Positions 2,507-42,706 are shown, counted from the first letter of the stretch. The stretch is 64,000 bases of DNA from Fimbriosthenelais zetlandica (GCA_977030845.1 OZ365110.1:23188001-23252000), one strand, 5' to 3'. Notes: a model not told the origin generated them from the sequence alone. Program-made: numbers and translations.

Positions 2507-5500
2507 ATGGCCGTAAGTACCACACATGTTCTAAAATACTGTTTGTTTATTAGGTTTTATTCCGTGTTTAAATGAATTTCCACGAAGAATTCCTTGTGGT
2601 TCTATTTGCTGAAATGTTAAGGAAGACGCTTAATTCGTGTTTGTTGAGAATCAAAGCGTTTATTGAGGAAAATGAAGACATAAATTGGTGGTTCTTGTGA
2701 TGTCTGGACGGGATGTGCGTGACGCACGTGGCCGTGGCCGATGCCCATGCACGATGCAGGTGCCCGTCCTATGTGTAACCACGAGGGCCAAAATCTTTTA
2801 GGGGTTACCGGAGACCATGTTTATAATAAATCTTCGTTAGAAAATATGTAGGAGCTTGCTGGGTGACCCCTCTACATATATGCGTTGCAGACTTGGCACA
2901 TTGGCGCATTGGCTGGGACAAGTCACAAGTAACTAGTGTTACTGTTAGGTGTTACTATGAACTTAGCAAAAGTCCAAGATAGAATCAAACGTAGGCCTAT
3001 AATAATTGGTAATGTGTATTCACTAGGTAGGCAGTAGGCTACTATAATCTAGACCCAAACTTGACCTGTGTAGAAAGTCTCTTGCAATCTTAAATCTATC
3101 CATAATAAATTTCTTTAGTTTTGAATTGATGTCCAATTCACAATTGCTGTGAATTATTAAATAATCTTCACCTAGTCGTAGAGTCGAAGTTTATAGATCA
3201 TAAAAACAAGAGCCATCCAAAATTTGACTTCTAAAAACTAAGACCACCAAATATATGACCCAAAAGATCCTCCATGTAGCCTAGACTACACCTTATATTT
3301 CTGGTTCGAATTTATATATTGCGCCTGCCTATCAATAGTATCATTATTCTTAGACAATATGATCGGCTCCTTACTCACAGGGATGGATATTTTATCTACA
3401 TTATTCTACGCCCTCGCATTTCCTCAACCGTATGTAGACTAATAAATTACTGTACCTTCTTATTTTTTACAGCCACAAGTTATGCACGTGCTCTTTGAGC
3501 ATGCCACAGGCTATGCATTATTTAAGGTCAAGGAGTTTGAAGAAATTGGTTTACTTCGACCCGAGGTAGAACAAAGTGTCACCGACATCAGCCGATTCAA
3601 TTCAGTAGTAAAACTGGTCGCATTTTCACCCTTCAAGAGTGGCACAAATGCATTGGACAATATGAACAGTATATCTGAAGGTGTGTAGTTTCAGATATTC
3701 CTGTCTTTTTTCCTGTTTAAACGTTCATATTGCATCATAGTAATAGACCTTTGTCTAATATTTTAAATTTAGTCTGGTTCCAATATTTCTCTGTCGATAT
3801 ACGGTATTCATAAAATTAAAGACAAATTTGTCCCGTACTAACTGAGAATGATATTTATGCTCTCTCCCCATATTCCAGGTGTTCTACATGAAGATCTTCG
3901 CTTATTTCTTGAAACCAACTGTCCCAAGACATCAAAGAAGATGACTTCAATTCTTGGCGTGGCTGACGCTAAAATCACTGCCACTATTTCTGAGGAATTA
4001 AACGTTAATTGTCAACACTCAGGTGTTGTACCCGAGATAATCCGAGGTTCGTCAATGTGGCTTTTAGCTAAAGTAAAAAGTTGGAAATTTTAAGCCAATT
4101 TAATTAGTTAATACATAAGTTAATCACGTCTAATGTAGTATTCCGGAGTATTTTTTTTCATTTGATTTATATATTTTTCATTGCAGGCCTGAGATTTCAT
4201 TTCCATAAGATGGTAAAAGGACTGACTGAGAAGTCGGCATCGAAAGCTCAGCTTGGTTTGGGTCACAGTTATTCTCGGTGTAAAGTGAAGTTCAATGTTA
4301 ACCGCTCAGACAACATGATCATTCAGAGTATTAGTTTACTTGATCAACTGGACAAAGACATCAATCTCTTCTCCATGAGAATTAGGTATGTGTATTTCCT
4401 TCTTAGCCTTGCTAGCTATTACAATACACATCTGCCAGGAATCGTTTGTATTATATTTCTGTGTACATTATTTTCAGAGAATGGTACTCCTACCACTTCC
4501 CAGAGCTCGTCAAGATAGTCCCAGAAAACTACATGTACGCCAAGGTCGCAAAGTTTATAAAGAACAGGAAAGAACTCACAGATGAATCGGTTGAACAAAT
4601 AGAAGAAATTATCATGGACTCGGCTAAAGCACAGGCTGTCTATGATGCCTCTAAATCCTCAATGGGTACGACGTTAGATTCCTTTTATAATTCTGTGGTC
4701 TAATTAAGTACCGGACACGAACAACAAATCTAACAAGACATAATCCGGAAAGAGATATATATATTTAGCCTCCTATTTTTATGTGTGTTTTATGTCCATT
4801 TTGCAGGTATGGATATTTCGCCCATTGATTTGATCAACATTGAACAGTTTGCCAAGAGGGTAATTGGACTCACGGAGTATAGAAAATGTCTCCAAGAATA
4901 TCTCCGGGAAAGAATGCATTCCGTCGCTCCAAACTTGGCCACCTTGATAGGAGAGCAGGTATGAAGATTATCTATCTCTTCTGGTTCTTAAATTAAATTA
5001 AGAACAGGTACTTCTTACTTTCATTCTAAAGTGATGTGATGAAAACAGATAGGTTAATCTGTTGATTTATGTAGTATTTAAACTAATGGTCGACTCTCAT
5101 AATTATACAGGTCGGAGCCCGGTTGATTTCACAAGCTGGTAGTCTCACAAATCTCGCCAAATATCCTGCTTCAACAGTTCAGATTCTTGGCGCAGAAAAA
5201 GCTCTCTTCAGGTACATCACTTTACTAGTCTCAACCAGTTCCAGTGAATATTATGATTAAATGAGGAATTCAATTTTTGAGCATAGATGTTATTTTATGG
5301 AAATTATATTCCTCCGTACCATAAAACCTGAATTTTTGGTACATGAATTGATCATCGTCCTCAATATTGAAAAGAATTCTTATCTATTTGCAGAGCCTTG
5401 AAGACTAGGGGTAACACGCCCAAATATGGTCTGATTTTCCACTCAACCTTTATTGGTCGTGCCGCTGCTAAAAACAAAGGAAGAATCTCTCGGTACTTGG

Positions 5501-32300: not shown

Positions 32301-34017
32301 GTGAAATATGTATGGTTACTTCATTTACCAGGTAATGTCACCTCTTATACATATTATGTGATATTTTTTTTTTTTTTTTACAAATATTATTCTACTGCGT
32401 AGGAAAGGACGTATTACATAAATACTAGGGATAGTAAGTCTTCACAATATTTTTATGTAATAGAACTTGGGAAAAAGATTTTGAACGAAAAAAAGATTTT
32501 TATCAGTGATTTGAATAGTCTGTTTCTGTTTCATAGGTGAGCTCCATGGTATTGTGCAGCGTCTGCTCTATTATAAACAACAGGATTATACTCCTGTGTC
32601 TTGGCTGGCCACAGCACATACTATAGTTCCCGTTGAGCTTCTTGTAATGGCTCATATCATAGTGGCGATCAAAATGATGATGTGCCTGGATGATAATACT
32701 GAATGGTCAGTGCTCAATTCCCTATCTACTTGATCCCATACTTATTTTTATTTTACATTTGTCTTATCTAATTCTCACCAAAAATGAATGCAAGTTAATG
32801 AAGGGCTTATTTTTATATTTAAAACAGGACGATTTCTAACTATGCAAAAGAGTTGAACACAAGAGTGCCAGGGTTGAACCTGTTTGTGTGGAGGGATTGG
32901 TTAGCGGTGATGGAGAGTAAAATAGACCCACCCAAACTACCTAATAATACTGGGTGAGTATGAAGAATAATGCTGAAGATCAGTTGTAGGTTAAAATTTT
33001 ATGGCTAGCACTATATCTGGAACGCTTTAACACTAACAGGCTTTGATTATGGAAATAATATTTTATATGTTTAAACATACAATATGCTCCATTTTACAGG
33101 GACGTTCTGCGAGTTTTGGATACTAAAATTCTTGATGAAGTGCCCTGCCTCTCAGATGATCACTTTAACAGACAGTTACACCGAAGTGGTAAGTGGTTTG
33201 TGCAAGTGACAGTGTTAAGGGTTAGAACATTGTGGTTCATTGCTTAGTTCTTAGTGTTTGAGTTAAGTCTATTTCTTGGGGCATAAATAGTGTGGTTCGA
33301 TATAACTCTGGATGAAGAGCTGACTGTCTGAAGTAGATAATAGAATTGGACGTAAATTTATTTGCTTGTTCACATTATCAATACATGTAACAAAAATTCC
33401 TTTCCTCAGATACCTATCTCACTAAGGAAACTCGTAATCTATTGGAGCATACCTTTACGGAACTTGGTGAGAAGCATCCACGAAAGAGACCGTACAGTGA
33501 ACTCTGCAGTCCAAAGAGCAGTGAAGGAGAAGGCCATGCTAAAAGGGACAGGAGGATAGAAGGGAGTCAGTCTGAGAGGACAACAGAGGGAACCTCTGAG
33601 TTCCCATTACCGTTTACAGACACATTAGTAGCTGATAGCTCCCCCATAAACAGTGATGATGAATGTTCTGAAGGAGAAATATCCTTCAGGGACAGGTCAC
33701 TGTCCTATCTCACCTCCTCAGATAGTGTACGTGAGTATGTTTCCAACCATAGCTCAAACACTGGAGAAGAGGAGCCTGAGCTCAGAGAATTCCATGCTTA
33801 TCTACATTACTGGATTGGGGATTCTTCATATAAAGACACCAGTAAATCATACCAGAAGTTAGTCGATATTGCTGCCAAGTTGTTACACTATCCTTCTGAT
33901 GAAGTTCATGGTTGGGTTTTCAAACTGGAACGGGTACTATTGAAGGAGGAAATCTTGGAGCAAGGATTCTCTACGAATAGGTTCTGGATACCCATAAATT
34001 TCCCTGGACATCTGTGA
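29340..34017 (+). CDS. TAF1B: TATA-binding protein-associated factor RNA polymerase I subunit B (Rrn7)
   Basis: N-terminal zinc ribbon MPLCPVCDGIDYEEVDGLFYCITCNTQSQ, then WFTEDALHIILRCQAGALIKKG, IHQLWLLYL, TISICHLALLYINNLVTTSDLYT|WLQDNSLPY and VMAHIIVAIKMMMCLDD. The last exon ends with the 33442-34017 ORF. Confidence 0.85.
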
Positions 34018-34419
34018 TCTTACCTGCTATTTTAATTTGTTAGTTGATTAATTTACGGTCTCTCCTTCAATGAGACATAGGATTAAATGTTAACTTAACA
34101 TTGTTTTGATGAAATATTTTAGATCTAATAAATCGTCTACCCACCCTGCAGTTTTGATTTAACTGAATTTAATTGTTACGGGTAGGCCAAGGCCCTGTGG
34201 TTTTGACTGTTGCCAATTTGCTATATGTTGTAAGCCAGGAATACACTAATCCGATTATCCAAACCGTCTAATGACATCTAAAGATTGAAATTTTGTAAGT
34301 GGTTAGCCCTACCTAGGTATAAAGGATGTTTCAAATTACAAGCATTTGGTGTGGATAGAAATATAGTTTCGGACAGCTATCGGTGATGAGAAATGCACAT
34401 AGACGAATATTTGACTTAA

Positions 34420-34791
34420 GCAGGCACAGTGCCTTACTAAGGCACCAGACAGGCACATTTAATTCCACATAGCTGTAGGCCATGTAGGCACATATTTTTC
34501 ATCTTGGTAGACGCCTCTATTTCCATTTACAACTGAGGCAGCTTCGTGTTCAGAGTCACGGCTCTGCAAACAATTGACTTTTAAAGCAGGCACAGTGCCT
34601 TAGTAAGGCACTAGACAGGCACATCTAATTCCGCACAGCTGTAGGCCATGTAGGCACATATTTTTCACATTGGTAGACGCATCTGTTTCCATTTACAACT
34701 GAGGCAGCTTCCTTTTCAGAGTCACGGCTATACAAATAATTGATTTATGCAGGCACAGTGCCTTACTAAGGCACCAGACAGGCACATCTAG
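34420..34791 (+). mobile_element. ~165-bp tandem array (2.3 units) ending in hairpin + CTAG, Helitron/Helentron-like non-autonomous element
   Basis: Units start at 34420, 34586 and 34749. Each carries the palindrome GTGCCTTA(C/G)TAAGGCAC. The last copy (34758-34774) is followed 13 nt later by CTAG (34788-34791). The repeat is certain; the Helitron assignment is inference. Confidence 0.55.
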
Positions 34792-35325
34792 GCCGATTAC
34801 CGGTATTGCTTCAGCGGCAAAGCAGCAGGTGGCAGCTCTGATCCGTCTCACCACCAAAATGATCAGCTGAACCAAAGATACTAATATAATATATTAACAA
34901 ACCCACTTTCCGTGGAAATAGGCTACCGTAACTCTAATTATCCTAGCCACATAAGACAATAAGTTACCGTATAAGACAGTCAACTGAGTCATACGAGATG
35001 AAAGCAATTTATGTTCCTTGAAGAAATCATCAGAATTCTCATTTTAAATCGATGTAGGCCTATTAAGCATGTTGCGGGCCCTCTCGTAGCTGCCGTTTTG
35101 CCACTCATGGACATGGTACGGTAGTTGCCCATATAGGCCTATGCTTAAAGTTATATAGATCTAGATCTATGCTACATTCAGCGCGCCATAAGCGCGGGAG
35201 CAGGTTTCCCAGCACTATGTGTACTGGCCTACATTCAATGCACATTAGGTGATGACGTAGTATGCAAGAAGTGTGAGGAAACCCCACACTTGAGTAGAGG
35301 GAAGAAACCACAAGGAGTGAAACTT

Positions 35326-35555
35326 ATGGAAATTGTTGAAAATTTATCGATTTTGTTGGATACTGTGCCGTTTGAAAACAAGTAAGTGGTTCTTTTACAA
35401 GGACTGGTGTTGTCTACTGGTCTGAATGCCTCCATGTTATCACAAATCTTATATCATCTTTGTAATCATTCGCGTTTCTTGATGACAGTTGTGCCTGTGT
35501 CTGTGGCACTGCCACTGCCAGTGCAGTGGTCGTGATTCAGCCAGTGAAGGACTGA
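35326..35555 (+). other. Spliced 40-codon upstream ORF in the R3HCC1 leader
   Basis: ATG 35326, donor AA|gtaagt at 35382, acceptor gacag|T at 35489, TGA at 35553-35555: MEIVENLSILLDTVPFENNCACVCGTATASAVVVIQPVKD. Confidence 0.45.
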
Positions 35556-36260
35556 CTTCGAGCACCAAGAGCCTAAGCAGAAATATTGTCGGATAAATGT
35601 AAGAAATGTGATTGCTTAATTATTGTGGAAATTTATACGCAATACGTGATTATCATAGACAATATACTATAGGTAGATATTAGGTCTAATCATAGTAATA
35701 ATGGTCCTGTTAAATGATCTTATTCTTAAATGCTGTTTTGAAATACCGGTAGTTTTGAATTTAGCCTTTTTTCTTTATTTTTATTTATAATATAACGTTA
35801 GTCTAGATCTAGGAATAATGGCAAAGACGGGGGGAAACACAATCTTGCAGAGTATTTGATATGAATATGTTTAAAACAGAAATATAAGAGGAGTATAATT
35901 ATTGCTTATATTGTCATCTAAAGTCACAGGTCAATAAAGAGAGTGTATTTTTGTTATTGTTACAGCACAGTGTATACTATATTGTATAAGAAAATACGTT
36001 GTAAAACAGAATTAGTTGAAATATAGTGTCCTTTAAAACTTCACCAAAAAAAACCAAAGAGACAGATGGTAGTATAGATGGTGTAGCAGTGCTAGGCTAG
36101 GCCTGGGCATAGGTAGACTCGTACCTGCCTGTTGTAATTTAAAAGTTATATGCCTACCGCAGAAATCTGAATATCGCAATTTAAACCACTCTAAATAATG
36201 TGTTTTCCATTCCTTTTAGGATATTTTTATGTATGTCAGGAAGAAGTGGGGACAGCTAAA

Positions 36261-38527
36261 CTGGCGGTACCTATTCTGGATGGACGATACCTTAATTCCG
36301 AGGACAGTGAGTTCTTCACTAAAATCGAGGAAGATATACAACATTACCTTGAGGGTGGATGTAAAAAGTAATTTTACATTTTTAAAAATGAGTGTAGGCT
36401 TGTAACGTGTTCTGTTCATAAAATAGCATATATGCCCAACAAATTTGTGTCTGCCCCATAGAGAAGCCTAGTATAATGTCTCTTTATCTTTTTCAGCATA
36501 CTCCTATTTCCCCACGTAGACAACTATCACCGACGTCTCATTCATCTCACGGTTGAGGAGAATTATCCCGATCTCCGCAGTTTCTCTGTTGGCGAGGGTG
36601 AGGACAGGCGCACTGCTGTCTGCCCTGAAATCCTCACTCCACAAGAGTAAGACGATCATTATAGAATTTTCCAATGTTCTGTTGTCTTTCTTGCATCAGA
36701 GGGCCGTTTATTCATCCATTGCATTGACTATTGATAGATTATGAAACCCTAACTACATGTATTTCATAACATAAGCGACATCTTGCGTTCAAATTTAAAT
36801 CGCATGGTTGAATTTCCAACATACAGTCTTATAACATATAATGTGTTTTCTATTGACAGAACCAATTCAATGGATCGCAATGTTGGCATGGCTAGGAAAA
36901 ATTTTGGACGAGGAAATTCAAAGTCCCGACCATCTCCAGACAGACGAGGTGATCGTGAGGGGAGCTGGGGAGGCGACAAATGGGAGGATAAAAGAAACAG
37001 GTAAAATAATATTAAGTTATGTTGGTGTTTAACAGTTAATGTAGATGTGTATTAAGGTGGATATTAAATTAAGTTAATCAGCTGTGAATACACAACCACC
37101 AGTGACCTCTTTACATATACCATTTACATGTACATGTAATTGTACTCCCTTTGTGCAGCTTTTATCCTGCATTCTATTCCATGAAAAAATTCAGAACCAT
37201 GTACTACAACAGGGATGCCTGTATTATTTCTGAAGAAATCCCTGGATTCTTTCCTAATGTTTTCTGTGAAACAAGGAGTTTTATGCACATATTCTAATTT
37301 AATACCTCATAATTTCCCCCTTTTCCAGTCTAGGTCGACTGGCATTTCTGTTACGAAATATCAAAGCAAAGGCCATATATATAATTAAACATGAATGTTT
37401 CTCGCTTTAGATCGAGAAACCGCTGGGAACATGATGATAGGGGAGGTTCTGACTACGGCCCTCAGAATGTAGAATCGCCAGTAGTGGGTAGACGTGGAAG
37501 GGGACGGGGGCGTGGTGGAGTAGCCGCCTCACCCCAACCACAGAAAAAAGGCTCACGTCAGAATTCCCCACAATACCGCAGAAACTCCACCGAATGGAGC
37601 CAATACAACAAGGGACAACGACCGAGAAGGGATTCAGATGGAAGCAACTGGGGAAAGGGTTCATACCACCATAGAGGCCAGGAATCTCCACAGGTCTACC
37701 GCCGAGGATCCGATCCCTGGGGGGACGGACCTACAAGTCCTCCAGACCATCATAGATCAGCCGGCAACCTGGGCAGGAATAGAGGCCCCGGGAGGAATGG
37801 ACCAGAAGGAGCTGAAGTGGACAGGTCACAAAGACAAAAACCTGCGTGTGTACTAGTGCTTGCATATGGGCTGAATTCATCACTATGCTTTACCCTCGCT
37901 ATGCTGTAGACGATGTCCTGTGATATACTTTAACTTACTAAATAAGTTGTCCTGTCCTTTTAATAATAATTATTCCTATTGTGGTGACTAATTATCCTAC
38001 CCCTTAAAGATCCTAAGTAACATTTCCATCATTTAAATGATCCTGAATATCCTAAACACCTTAGGTTTAATTCTGTAAGAGAATTAAATTCTATTACAAG
38101 CATGACATACACTTCTTGCCTTCTGAATGATACAATTAAATCTGAATGAATTTAGATTTCATAGTTTGACGAGAAAGCCATAACCCTAATGTGTTTAATG
38201 GATTATTAATTGTCTCATTTTTTGATTGCAGCAAGGTGAGAAGACCTGATGCTCAGGTTTATATACCGCGAGCACGCCGGCAGCAGATGGTGGAGCGGGA
38301 AGACACTGATTCACCACCACCATGTAACATGGACAATAACCATGGACCGGGCTACAGGTCCGGTCCTGGCCGACGAAACAACCCACGTCCAAATACAGAT
38401 GTGTATGTGCCGAGAGTTAAAAGAGCCGAACAAGACACTAACCTGGGGCCTGGTAGGAACCATTATGGTTCCATGCCAGGTCTGAGATACCCGCAACACC
38501 AGCAACAATATCCACAACAGCAACATC

Positions 38528-38576
<49 letters not shown>

Positions 38577-41500
38577 GGACTATGGTGATCCATGGAAATC
38601 AGAAGACGGTGGGAAATATAACCAAAAACGAAGGAAAAGTCTGGAAGGCAACAAGTCTCGGGGTGGGTCTCGGAGTGGCTCGGTGGATAACAGGAATAGA
38701 TACAATGAGGGATATACGGATTATCAGGATGAACCATATCAGGGAGGTAGAGGGGGTGATCATATCCCAGAACAAACATTTTATAACAGAGCAATGCGAG
38801 CCATGACTCCAGATGATCAGTATGATTCTAGATCAGATTATCATGGTGGTGGTGGTGGGCGACATAATAATGATCGGCCTGATAGAACACCATCCAGAAA
38901 CCGTCGGAGGAGGAGATCCCACTCCAACTCTAGTCGCCGGAGCCAACCCTCGCCTAACAGAACCGCTGGAGGTCCTGGTCCGCCCGGCAGGAGGGAAGGT
39001 CGGAGACCCAGTGATACATGGTCTCAGGACGGAGCGTCAATGAACAGAAGAGCAAGTGAGACATGGAGTCAGGATGAGGGTTATTATATGGGTGGTGGGA
39101 GTAACTCTCTCCCCCGTAGACACCGGAGAACCAGCGGTGGCTACAGTAACCCCGATGAGTCATGGCCTCAGGACCGCTACCCTAACGAGACCTGGAGTCC
39201 ATCCCACCAGATGAATGAACCGTGGGGTCCTAATGAGAGCAGGACACTTGGTAGAATCAGGAGATCTAGTGGAGGGAGGAACCAGGAGGCCAACATTCCC
39301 TCCTCTGAAAGCTGGAGTCCCACACAACAAAGCTGGAGCCCCACCCAACAACCTGGAGATATATGGAACCAAAATAAACCAGGACAGGGGCGGGGGAGAA
39401 CAAGGAGAAAAAGTGGCGGTCATAAGGGAGAATATAATGACAATAATCCGGGACGTAGAATGCAGCAGCCAGGGGGTAACTGGAACCAAAACCCACAAGG
39501 TGACAACCAAGTGCAGCCCAATAGAAGATGGCAACAAAGCCCTGGGCCTAACAAGCGGCGGAGTCGGAACCAAGCGCGGTCTGTGACACCATCAGAGTCA
39601 TGGTCGTCAGACGCTGAGAACTGGGAGAGTGATAGCCATAGCCTGGGACCTAGTAGTGGTAGCCACTATACACTGCCACCTACTGGTAATATGATCATTG
39701 AAGTGACACCTGGGGGTAGGAATGTGAGTGATACCAAGGCTGCTTTCAGTGCTATGGTCGGCTCTCCGACCCATGATCCCGCCCTCCTCGAGGAGACTGT
39801 GCGAGCTCAGGCGAGCGATGTATCCGACAAAGTCCGCAGTATGTGTGCCGACCTCTCAGAATTAAAACACTCAAAGGAAAAGCTCAATGCTGAATTACAA
39901 GGTGCAAACTCCAAAAATCGCAAACGTCGAGACTCGCAAAAAAGCCAGGACTTGGGTTCTGAAAAGGAATCTGTTAAATCCGATGCCTCCCCCCACCATC
40001 CAACTTATGAACATAATAACATGAACTATGCAACGGAAGTAGAAAATAGCCATGTGTGTGACAGTACTAGTAGCAGCACAAGCCCTTCACACGGGCCTAA
40101 CGTCCAAAGACTAGAGCCACCATTTGTACCCCATCCTATAGACGCTGATGACGTCAGTTCAGATGGACAGAGTTCAGTACAGCCAGAGTCAAGCACCAGT
40201 GTGGAGAGCCCTGATATGGGGGAGTTCCATGCATTGAGTAGTGCTGGAGAACATGAAGCTAGTCCACAGAGCTGTAGTCCTGCTCCACCTGAATGTCTTC
40301 AACCAGAAGCACCTCCACAGACGAGTCCCCTGGCCATAGCTGACGGCGCTAAGCTCGGCTATGTCAATGTTGCTTTTGAGGACGATCCTGGCCTGGCCGA
40401 GGAGGAACAGGACAGGAAGGTGGAAGATGATAATTCAAAATTAAATTATCATCCATCTGAAAATGGTCTTAAAGATCAAGAAGAGCCTGAGGAAAAATTA
40501 CCCCCTGAAGCCCAAATTGCCACTCCAAGTGAAGAGTCCCACAAAATGGAGGAAGAACAACAGAGTGAAAAAACAGACAGTGATACTCTGACTATAAATG
40601 TGTCAGCAAATGAGCCCTATGAGGCCACGGATCCTTCCGACAAAACAAAATTAGACGATACTGAACCATTGGCTGAGGAAGATCAACCGACCATCAGTGA
40701 AGATCTATATGATCAAGTTATGTACTCAGAGTCTGTGCCAGACAAACTAGAAACAAGTGATGACGTTCCCAGCCCTGAGGTGAAGGGAGGAGACGAGGAG
40801 GTGTCTGGGGCAACAGATAGCGGGGAGCCGCATCTAAACTGGGCCGACATGGTGGATGATGACGATGATGAAAACGATGATACGACATGGGATCGTCTAT
40901 TTGATGAAACAGGAGAAGCCCTAGATCCTAAACTCCTAGACGAGGCGAGTTATCAACCATACACTTATAGATACTTTATTTTTATTACCAGTACAACTCT
41001 TCTTTCTTTTCCGTCTCTCTATTGCATATACATATATAGTATAGTAATATCTTGTGCTTAGAGAACTTTCCTAAATTTATCATTGTTATGGGAATTATAT
41101 TTATGAAATTTAAGAAAATAATTTGCTTGGAGACAAGATAATAATTGTGGCATACTCTGCATTGAATTCACTTGACTGAATTAATAGTCGTAAATTAACG
41201 CCATCCAATTTTCCAAGTCTTAAATCTTTCTTGTTCTTTCTTTACAGTTGACGATTGCTGTAGGTAAAGAAGTAAAAGTTCAAAAGCCTCAAGCAGATTA
41301 TTACAACTACCAACCTAAAGACCCAGATATGGATGACCGAGGTAAGCGAGGGGAAATATTCTCATATAGTCCACATCCTAGTAAAAACTAGACTTGTAGA
41401 TCATCATAGATCAGATATTAAAATGATTATTTTCCAGAACATAACTGGGATATGTGATTTGTGATTGTTTGACTTTTTTTTCATTTACAGAATACGGTCA

Positions 41501-42706
41501 TCTCATTGAAATATTTGATTTCCCGAAAGAATTGCTTACCCGAGATCTGATGGTCGCCTTCAAAGATTTCCAGTATGTACCAATTAGTCATGAATATCAT
41601 TGTGATGTTAACTTTCATGCTGTATCATATACTTATAATTATGTAATCTCTTCTGTACATTACACCATTAATCATTCCTTATTTATACCTTGGGAAAAGT
41701 AGACTTTAATGCTGTTTAATTAAAATAAATATTCTAATATCTTTGTTTTCAGTGAAAGGGGCTTTGATTTGAAATGGGTCGACGACACTCATTGTATTGG
41801 AGTATTTTCAAGCTCTATTGCAGGTAAGGTGATTCAAATGTGAAGAGATTTTACATTCAGGTTATCTCAAAATTTGTTATTACCATTCGATATAATGAGA
41901 TCTTTCAGATATTGATGCAAGTGTTTCATATACATTTTCAGCACAAGCAGCCCTTGGAATGCGTCACCCGCTGCTCAAAGTCCGGCCCATAGCACACGCT
42001 TCCCGACAGACAAAAGTAAAAGCCAAACGCTGTGCAGGTAGGATTTCTGTTAATATTTTTTAACTCCCACCTGGGTAGACTACTGTACTACCCTTCATGG
42101 AACATTTTTTGTCCTGCTGATTGCTGAATTTTGCCTTAGTTGGTTACAGATTAACCTGTTCATTCATATTTCTATAATGATGTAATTTTTTCCCACAGAA
42201 TTCCTGGAGCCCTATAGACCACGACAGGAGACGACTGCAGCCGTGGCACGCAGTTTGGTGACCAGAGCGCTTGGTATCAAATCTCAAGTTCCCAGAGAGA
42301 AAAGAGAGCGGGAGAGAAATAAATTAAAAGAAGCCAGAGGTATGAGATTAAGAACGTCCAAATTCAATATTTTGTTTGAACCTTCGGGTTGCAAAAGAAT
42401 ACTTTGTAAACTGCCATTCATACTCCTTTGGGGTCGGGGTATTAAGCTAAGGATTAAAAATAAATCAATGAATTTAAATTGAAAACCATTCTTTTTATAT
42501 TTGCTTGCAGAGAAGAAAAACGCGACACAGAGACAGAGAAAAGATGCCTGGGAAGGTAACTTTCCCTCAAGTCACATGGACCAATGAGTTGTGCTCCCAG
42601 GCCTATCTTCCTTCCTTCCAACCCCTTCTCCCTTACCGCAGGAGATCTGTTCAGCACTGCAGAAACTACTGCTCTACAATCGAGTTTCCAGTCAAAAACC
42701 TGTTGA
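36261..42706 (+). CDS. R3HCC1: R3H and coiled-coil domain-containing protein 1 / R3HCC1L family, probable CUG start
   Basis: R3H domain ILLFPHVDNYHRRLIHLTVEENYPDLRSFSVGEGEDRRTAVC, EBM RRPDAQVYIPRARR, C-terminal WDRLFDETGEALDP, HLIEIFDFPKELLTRDL, GFDLKWVDDTHCIGVFSS and PYRPRQETTAAVARSLVTRALG. The last intron (42556-42641) gives a stop at 42706; if it is retained, the stop is at 42587. Confidence 0.88.
38527..38577 (+). repeat. (CAA)n polyglutamine tract in the large R3HCC1 exon
   Basis: Pure CAA run ending in CAG, about 17 Gln codons, in frame. Confidence 0.95.

Follow-up and report, generated by a model that had tools for sequence, protein, structure and literature searches.

A CUG codon at the vertebrate R3HCC1 start position as the predicted start of an R3HCC1-like gene in Fimbriosthenelais zetlandica

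Introduction

Few proteins are made solely from a non-AUG codon, and for most of them such a start is young or limited to vertebrates. GUG initiation of EIF4G2 (NAT1/DAP5) is widely conserved in animals. The CUG start of human R3HCC1 was described by comparative analysis, with an in-frame stop upstream of it and out-of-frame AUGs after it (PMC3105428; Ivanov et al. 2011). Ribosome profiling and reporters gave this codon approximately 30% of the activity of a Kozak AUG, with eIF5 and 5MP acting oppositely (PMC5714202; Tang et al. 2017), and the start was also detected by TISCA N-terminal proteomics (PMC8287933). The out-of-frame AUGs of the human gene were proposed to block the downstream in-frame AUGs (PMC5714202). 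R3HCC1 has been described as conserved in mammals (PMC3105428) and its protein as conserved in vertebrates (PMC5714202); in the literature on R3HCC1 or R3HCC1L with CUG we found no treatment of invertebrates or of bilaterian-wide depth. GTF3A starts at a CUG in mammals, where birds, frogs, fish and insects have an AUG, and start-context data exist for NAT1 (both PMC5714202). In this work, we analyse an R3HCC1-like gene on the plus strand of a 64,000-nucleotide stretch of Fimbriosthenelais zetlandica DNA (GCA_977030845.1 OZ365110.1:23188001-23252000; "the window", with positions counted from its first letter), and we propose, with a probability of roughly 0.7, that translation of this gene begins at the CUG at 36261, which corresponds to the first codon of vertebrate R3HCC1.

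Results and Discussion

A candidate CUG start codon at 36261

The sequence LAVPILDGRYLNSEDSEF begins with the CTG at 36261..36263, and the flanking bases are gctaaa-CTG-gcg, with A at -3, G at +4 and C at +5 (direct reading), as a first-pass annotation of the window had described when it proposed CUG initiation. Downstream, no in-frame ATG occurs before 36870 (MDRNVG), which is codon 90 if the CTG is codon 1 and lies beyond the R3H domain. An intact R3H domain therefore requires a start at or upstream of 36261. Coelacanth R3HCC1 (P0076, MALLCLDGVYL...) aligned to the window without gaps; its M1 fell on 36261, and its M1-A2 corresponded to L-A in the window. This alignment and the CTG present in 11 other sequence groups (see below) strongly support the earlier proposal of a CUG start at the vertebrate start position.

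The GT donor at 35599 (aat/gtaaga) and the AG acceptors ending at 36219 and 36239 were found where they had been annotated. Acceptors were scored by a simple position-weight score and AG/GT dinucleotides were checked; the scores were 6.64 for the exon start at 36220, 1.03 for 36240 and -1.62 for 36163. Joining 35598 to 36220 places an in-frame T/GA at the junction, while joining it to 36240 brings in the in-frame TGA at 35545-35547, with no ATG after it. The earlier statement that no AUG lies upstream of the R3H frame is correct for both of these spliced models, in which conserved coding sequence precedes the first in-frame AUG and an in-frame stop lies farther 5', but not for the genomic frame, which has an ATG at 36198.

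In the mechanism that we propose, the leader intron would be removed just 5' of the start and a scanning 40S subunit would arrive at CUG 36261, where the initiator Met-tRNA would pair despite one mismatch. The surrounding A at -3, A at -2, G at +4 and C at +5 would aid this pairing, in a context resembling CAAA-AUG, the consensus of invertebrate AUG starts. The protein would begin Met-Ala-Val-Pro-Ile-Leu-Asp-Gly and the whole R3H domain would be made. Ribosomes missing the CUG would meet the first AUG past it, at 36280..36282, which is out of frame (36-codon open reading frame (ORF) ending at 36519 in exon 3); it would catch leaky-scanning ribosomes ahead of any in-frame AUG. It is followed by a one-codon AUG ORF at 36359. 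An out-of-frame AUG in this place matches what was reported for human R3HCC1 (PMC5714202), and it bears on the suggestion of the first-pass annotation that leaky scanning could also yield an R3H-less isoform resembling vertebrate R3HCC1L, since the AUG at 36280 would be reached first.

The window gene resembles mammalian R3HCC1 in being orthologous to it, in carrying R3H at the very N-terminus and in having its proposed start at the aligned position, with a purine at -3, G at +4, out-of-frame AUGs before the first in-frame AUG and, in the spliced models, an upstream in-frame stop. The intervening out-of-frame AUGs are two in the window vs. six in the human gene, and the window leader may carry upstream AUGs, a difference from mammalian R3HCC1. 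Unlike the mammalian case, the same codon is seen here in protostomes and non-vertebrate deuterostomes; however, direct evidence of initiation (footprints, reporter, N-terminal peptide) belongs to the human gene, while the invertebrate case is known from sequence comparison. EIF4G2 is similar in that a conserved protein starts at a non-AUG codon only, which has long been kept and depends on a strong context, but it is an unrelated gene and uses GUG, not CUG. GTF3A is similar to the R3HCC1 family in that one position switches between AUG and CUG among lineages (ATG, CTG or GTG in R3HCC1). By contrast, the GTF3A CUG is derived and limited to mammals, while the CTG of the R3HCC1 family is widespread and its ATG looks repeatedly derived.

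The start codon across orthologues

The exon-3 peptide had 75 homologues among 1.84 billion representative proteins. Many of their N-termini read K-L-A or K-L-D where the window has K-L-A, some have M there, and nothing upstream is common to them. Orthologue DNA came from five named phyla and from metagenome/transcript contigs, including loci from a JGI metagenome scan (four-sequence alignment); Schistocerca and Ischnura stood outside this DNA codon comparison. The start region was compared start-anchored and ungapped; in the MAFFT alignment, some rows were off by a codon.

Counting the window, 12 sequence groups had CTG at the codon aligned to 36261; two had GTG and the rest ATG, and no other codon was found there. 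CTG was present in the scorpion Centruroides vittatus, the amphioxus Branchiostoma belcheri, the chiton Liolophura sinensis, the mayfly Cloeon dipterum and the crinoid Anneissia japonica, as well as in the RNA-derived contig L004, a locust-like group (L030, L033, L038, L042 and L048), L066/L060, L068/L069, L067 and L075 (ttcact CTG gct). The two sequences with GTG were the nemertean Tubulanus polymorphus (tcc ACC GTG GCG) and the marine contig L070. ATG was found in L011/L012 (an AUG form of the start with an in-frame stop upstream), eight MAVYVGDRYL-type contigs, the MNFEGQN transcripts, L072, L073 and P0035 (internal). The alignment of 5' exons across invertebrates, which the first-pass annotation had named as one way to check its proposal, gave a codon that is not free to vary as leucine, being CTG, GTG or ATG only.

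Six metatranscriptome contigs of the MNFEGQN type (L014, L020, L025, L026, L027 and L028), which come from different samples and species, share a 5' end identical over approximately the first 35 nt (…gcttgattcacttctacaagag) and diverge past it. This common end looks like a trans-spliced leader.

One contig, L067, is a spliced metatranscript that runs from exon 2 straight into exon 3, with an ORF of more than 579 codons. Its 204-nt leader has an in-frame TGA and no in-frame AUG, and the start reads tcc AAC CTG GCG. The first in-frame AUG of L067 lies 92 codons downstream, with three out-of-frame AUGs before it.

Codon usage at the same loci served as a control. Other leucine codons of exons 2-3 were CTG in 11/52 cases, and the leucine of R-Y-L, which is just as conserved, was encoded by CTT, TTG or CTG. 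At the pooled frequency, the chance that six of six independent leucine codons are CTG is approximately 9e-5; it is far smaller for eleven groups, which are not fully independent. A second CTG (36276..36278), also with A at -3 and G at +4, was the internal control; its homologous codons are TTA, TTG, TTG, GTG, ATT, etc., and it was rejected as a start because it is not conserved in the orthologues.

The context pointed in the same direction. Among the 20 non-AUG sequences, A at -3 and G at +4 were present in all, and C at -4 in 18/20; the window (TAAA CTG GC, -4 to +5, 36257..36265) differs in having T at -4. Upstream of the start, conservation breaks off sharply beyond -4: no constraint was seen from -5 to -15, and codon -2 encodes A, D, I, S, F or V. 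In the AUG sequences, by contrast, A at -3 was present in 6/17 and +4 was often A (Fisher p 2e-4, phylogeny uncorrected), so that A at -3 and G at +4 are invariant only where the codon at the start position is not ATG. The pattern fits a start codon needing contextual help, not an internal Lys-Leu-Ala. The minimum context for a non-AUG start is (G/A)xxNUGG (PMC5714202), and the window CTG has the purine at -3 and the G at +4 of a strong context, as do all 20 non-AUG sequences.

The CTG in scorpion, mayfly, chiton, crinoid and amphioxus agrees with the great age that the first-pass annotation had assigned to the CUG start. Given CTG in a cephalochordate, an echinoderm, an arachnid, insects and a mollusc, and the documented CUG start of mammals, CTG is the parsimonious ancestral state of bilaterians, and several independent changes from ancestral CTG to ATG and GTG would be the parsimonious account of the other forms. 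The CUG start known from mammals is thus probably very old. We consider it slightly better than an even bet that sole non-AUG initiation of the R3HCC1 family goes back to the bilaterian ancestor and has lasted for more than half a billion years, the codon at this one position having changed repeatedly between CUG, GUG and AUG. If this is true, the family would be among the oldest known non-AUG starts, and its output would depend on stringency factors (eIF1, eIF5, 5MP) across animals. A CUG held in chordates, echinoderms, arthropods and molluscs, and swapped for nothing but GUG or AUG, suggests selection for weak, tunable initiation as such in this RNA-binding protein. The orthologues would also offer ready-made CUG, GUG and AUG versions of one start site for studying how context and initiation factors act outside mammals. 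Annotation pipelines mishandle this gene, giving "partial" models or unrelated N-terminal extensions, and a conserved CAAR-CUG-GC signature would allow them to place the start correctly.

Alternative explanations

Several points weigh against initiation at the CUG. Exon 1, the leader form and the acceptor choice of the window gene are predicted from its sequence only, as is use of CUG 36261 in this species. Searches for sequencing runs, with 5.7 kb of the gene (RNA runs) and with 2.8 kb of the large exon (runs of any kind), listed none. The best acceptor, 36220, brings two out-of-frame AUGs (36229 and 36233; 36229..36235) ahead of the CTG, which would reduce use of the CUG. Both are in a weak context (T at -3, T at +4). 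The ORF from 36229 has 53 codons, ends at 36519 and overlaps the CTG, while that from 36233 has 8 codons and ends with the TAA at 36259, 1 base before the CTG. These AUGs are in the leader only with acceptor 36220; with the weaker alternative exon start at 36240, the stretch from the junction to the CTG has no AUG. No conserved hairpin that could aid CUG recognition was seen 3' of the start, where folds differ among species. The sequence groups compared are not phylogenetically independent, and several come from unidentified organisms. Furthermore, RefSeq models in four phyla provide an in-frame upstream AUG exon, and the in-frame ATG at 36198, overlooked in the first-pass annotation, would serve as the start if that stretch were transcribed and unspliced.

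A conventional AUG start at 36198 is unlikely, yet it is the alternative that survives best. The mRNA would include the 3' end of the supposed intron, owing to an internal promoter, use of the weak acceptor 36163 or intron retention, and the protein would carry the 21-residue extension MCFPFLLGYFYVCQEEVGTAK ahead of LAVP.... The ATG (36198..36200) lies 21 codons 5' of the CTG with no intervening stop, its ORF (36198..36371) is open, and it has A at -3. However, it sits within the pyrimidine tract of the best acceptor (6.64 for 36220 vs. -1.62 for 36163), and it is missing from the mRNA only when that intron is removed. The extension is hydrophobic and resembles a translated pyrimidine tract; approximately 0.4 ATGs are expected by chance in 21 random codons of the same composition (estimate). 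Moreover, L004-L010 have no in-frame ATG before a stop in the contiguous upstream sequence, and the conservation that starts at -4 does not extend farther upstream toward 36198.

We give slightly less weight to an unrecognised upstream coding exon that supplies an in-frame AUG, with the CTG being an ordinary internal leucine. Four RefSeq models (scorpion, chiton, crinoid and nemertean) and one GenBank model have upstream coding exons, and candidate joins exist in the window (e.g. ATG 35011, 35107 or 35113 with donor 35116, score 2.62, to 36240). The complete models (scorpion, chiton, crinoid, nemertean and amphioxus), however, have upstream ATG exons that encode mutually unrelated peptides, and these extensions show no similarity between species. 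Two of these exons have weak donors (gttagg in amphioxus, from the GenBank model, and gttgat in the nemertean). Gene predictors are obliged to find an ATG and are therefore prone to adding such exons, and the ATG starts of the scorpion, chiton, crinoid and nemertean models were probably forced in this way. No upstream extension is present in the Cloeon model or in three of the six Schistocerca models; these are marked "partial" in RefSeq and begin a few residues ahead of K-L-D. An internal leucine would not remain CTG in all 11 of the Leu-encoding orthologue groups, nor change only to GTG or ATG, and A at -3 and C at -4 would not persist alongside a variable upstream residue. The L067 transcript, in addition, has no in-frame AUG upstream of its CTG. 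In the loci compared here (L005, L007, L009 and L010), the annotated ATG first exons of the four RefSeq models start at position 3001.

Exclusive use of the downstream AUGs 36870 and 36888, with exons 2-3 as leader and the R3H-like frame as a relic, is very improbable: these are the first in-frame AUGs and 36888 (exon 4) has G at -3 and G at +4, but two out-of-frame AUGs lie between the CTG and 36870, and the R3H frame is open from the CTG on and kept at the protein level across phyla with synonymous codon variation.

Structure of the gene

The window gene (approximately 36220-42341, plus strand) is, on its domain match and alignments, the invertebrate pro-orthologue of vertebrate R3HCC1 and R3HCC1L. 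Its product has an R3H domain at the N-terminus, a region with a YVPR-type motif, and an RRM-like domain at the C-terminus. Predicted exon 2 (36220..36367; acceptor 36220, donor aaa/gtaatt after 36367) contains the CTG and the first part of R3H. Exon 3 (36497..36646) encodes the R3H core and matches Pfam PF01424 (R3H) with an E value of 3.7e-10 over profile positions 22-60 of 60; as the match begins at position 22, the first third of the domain comes from exon 2. In agreement with this, exon 2 aligns with the N-terminal part of the R3H domain in the orthologues. The exon-2 ORF had no homologue in the word-indexed protein search. The in-frame AUGs at 36870-36872 (the first, codon 90) and 36888 are both in exon 4 (36860..37000), and exon 5 is predicted to start at 37411.

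Exons of the C-terminal RRM-like domain lie at approximately 41245-42341. By tblastn, residues 311-389 of coelacanth R3HCC1 matched 41490-42024, with the RRM-like domain and tail shared, and the scallop, acorn-worm and nemertean orthologues matched the N- and C-terminal domains of the gene, up to 42341. The contigs of the closest relative (L001-L003) are approximately 75% identical in exons; they begin within intron 2 and so are without exon 2, while exon 3 is kept in L001.

A large low-complexity exon starts at 38232 and was aligned with the relatives P0001 and P0002. Used as a query, it found two relatives only, both unannotated. More than 20 glutamine codons in a row are present in this exon (window approximately 38500-38580) and are absent from P0001 (68% identical) and from P0002; by this comparison, the run is a recent expansion.

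The leader and the upstream region

A pyrimidine tract and AG lie 6-72 nt 5' of the start at each genomic orthologue locus, and therefore a leader intron right before the start appears to be a conserved design. In the window, the putative 5' untranslated exon is 35455..35598 (donor 35599, score 1.92), with in-frame stops and no usable ATG. Possible upstream AUGs are 35482, within this exon, and 35426 and 35434, just 5' of its start. An alternative candidate leader exon, 35326..35381, has an ATG at 35326 (MEIVENLSILLDTVPFENK) and ends at the strongest donor of the region (35382, caa/gtaagt); its ATG is out of the R3H frame via either acceptor (36220 or 36240). Donor 35382, CTG 36276 and AUGs 36229/36233 were additions to the first-pass annotation. 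ATG exons able to join either acceptor in frame were searched for systematically; the only candidates had weak donors, and none was adopted.

Short out-of-frame upstream ORFs end just ahead of the CTG in both the window (36233-36259; 8 codons, 1 nt before) and the chiton. The chiton ORF (L007, approximately 3850-3870) has 5 codons (ATG TGT CCA TTC GTG TGA) and ends 4 nt ahead of the CTG. The stop next to the CTG in the two species may be a coincidence or part of start-site control.

In the GTG-start marine-metagenome orthologue L070 (approximately 1032-1050), the acceptor tract likewise includes an ATG in frame with the start (gtt ATG att tca g/gg ttc aag GTG), as does that of the window with ATG 36198.

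Positions 35180-35385 of the window comprise a CpG-rich, palindrome-like stretch (gcgcgccataagcgcggga) and a CRE-like tgacgta at approximately 35254, followed by ATG 35326 and donor 35382, and are a possible promoter or first-exon region. Farther upstream, between the last ORF of the upstream gene (33442-34017) and the R3HCC1-like gene, positions 34400-34800 contain three copies of a repeat of approximately 100-150 bp (…gcaggcacagtgccttactaaggcaccagacaggcacat…ccatttacaactgaggcagcttc…).

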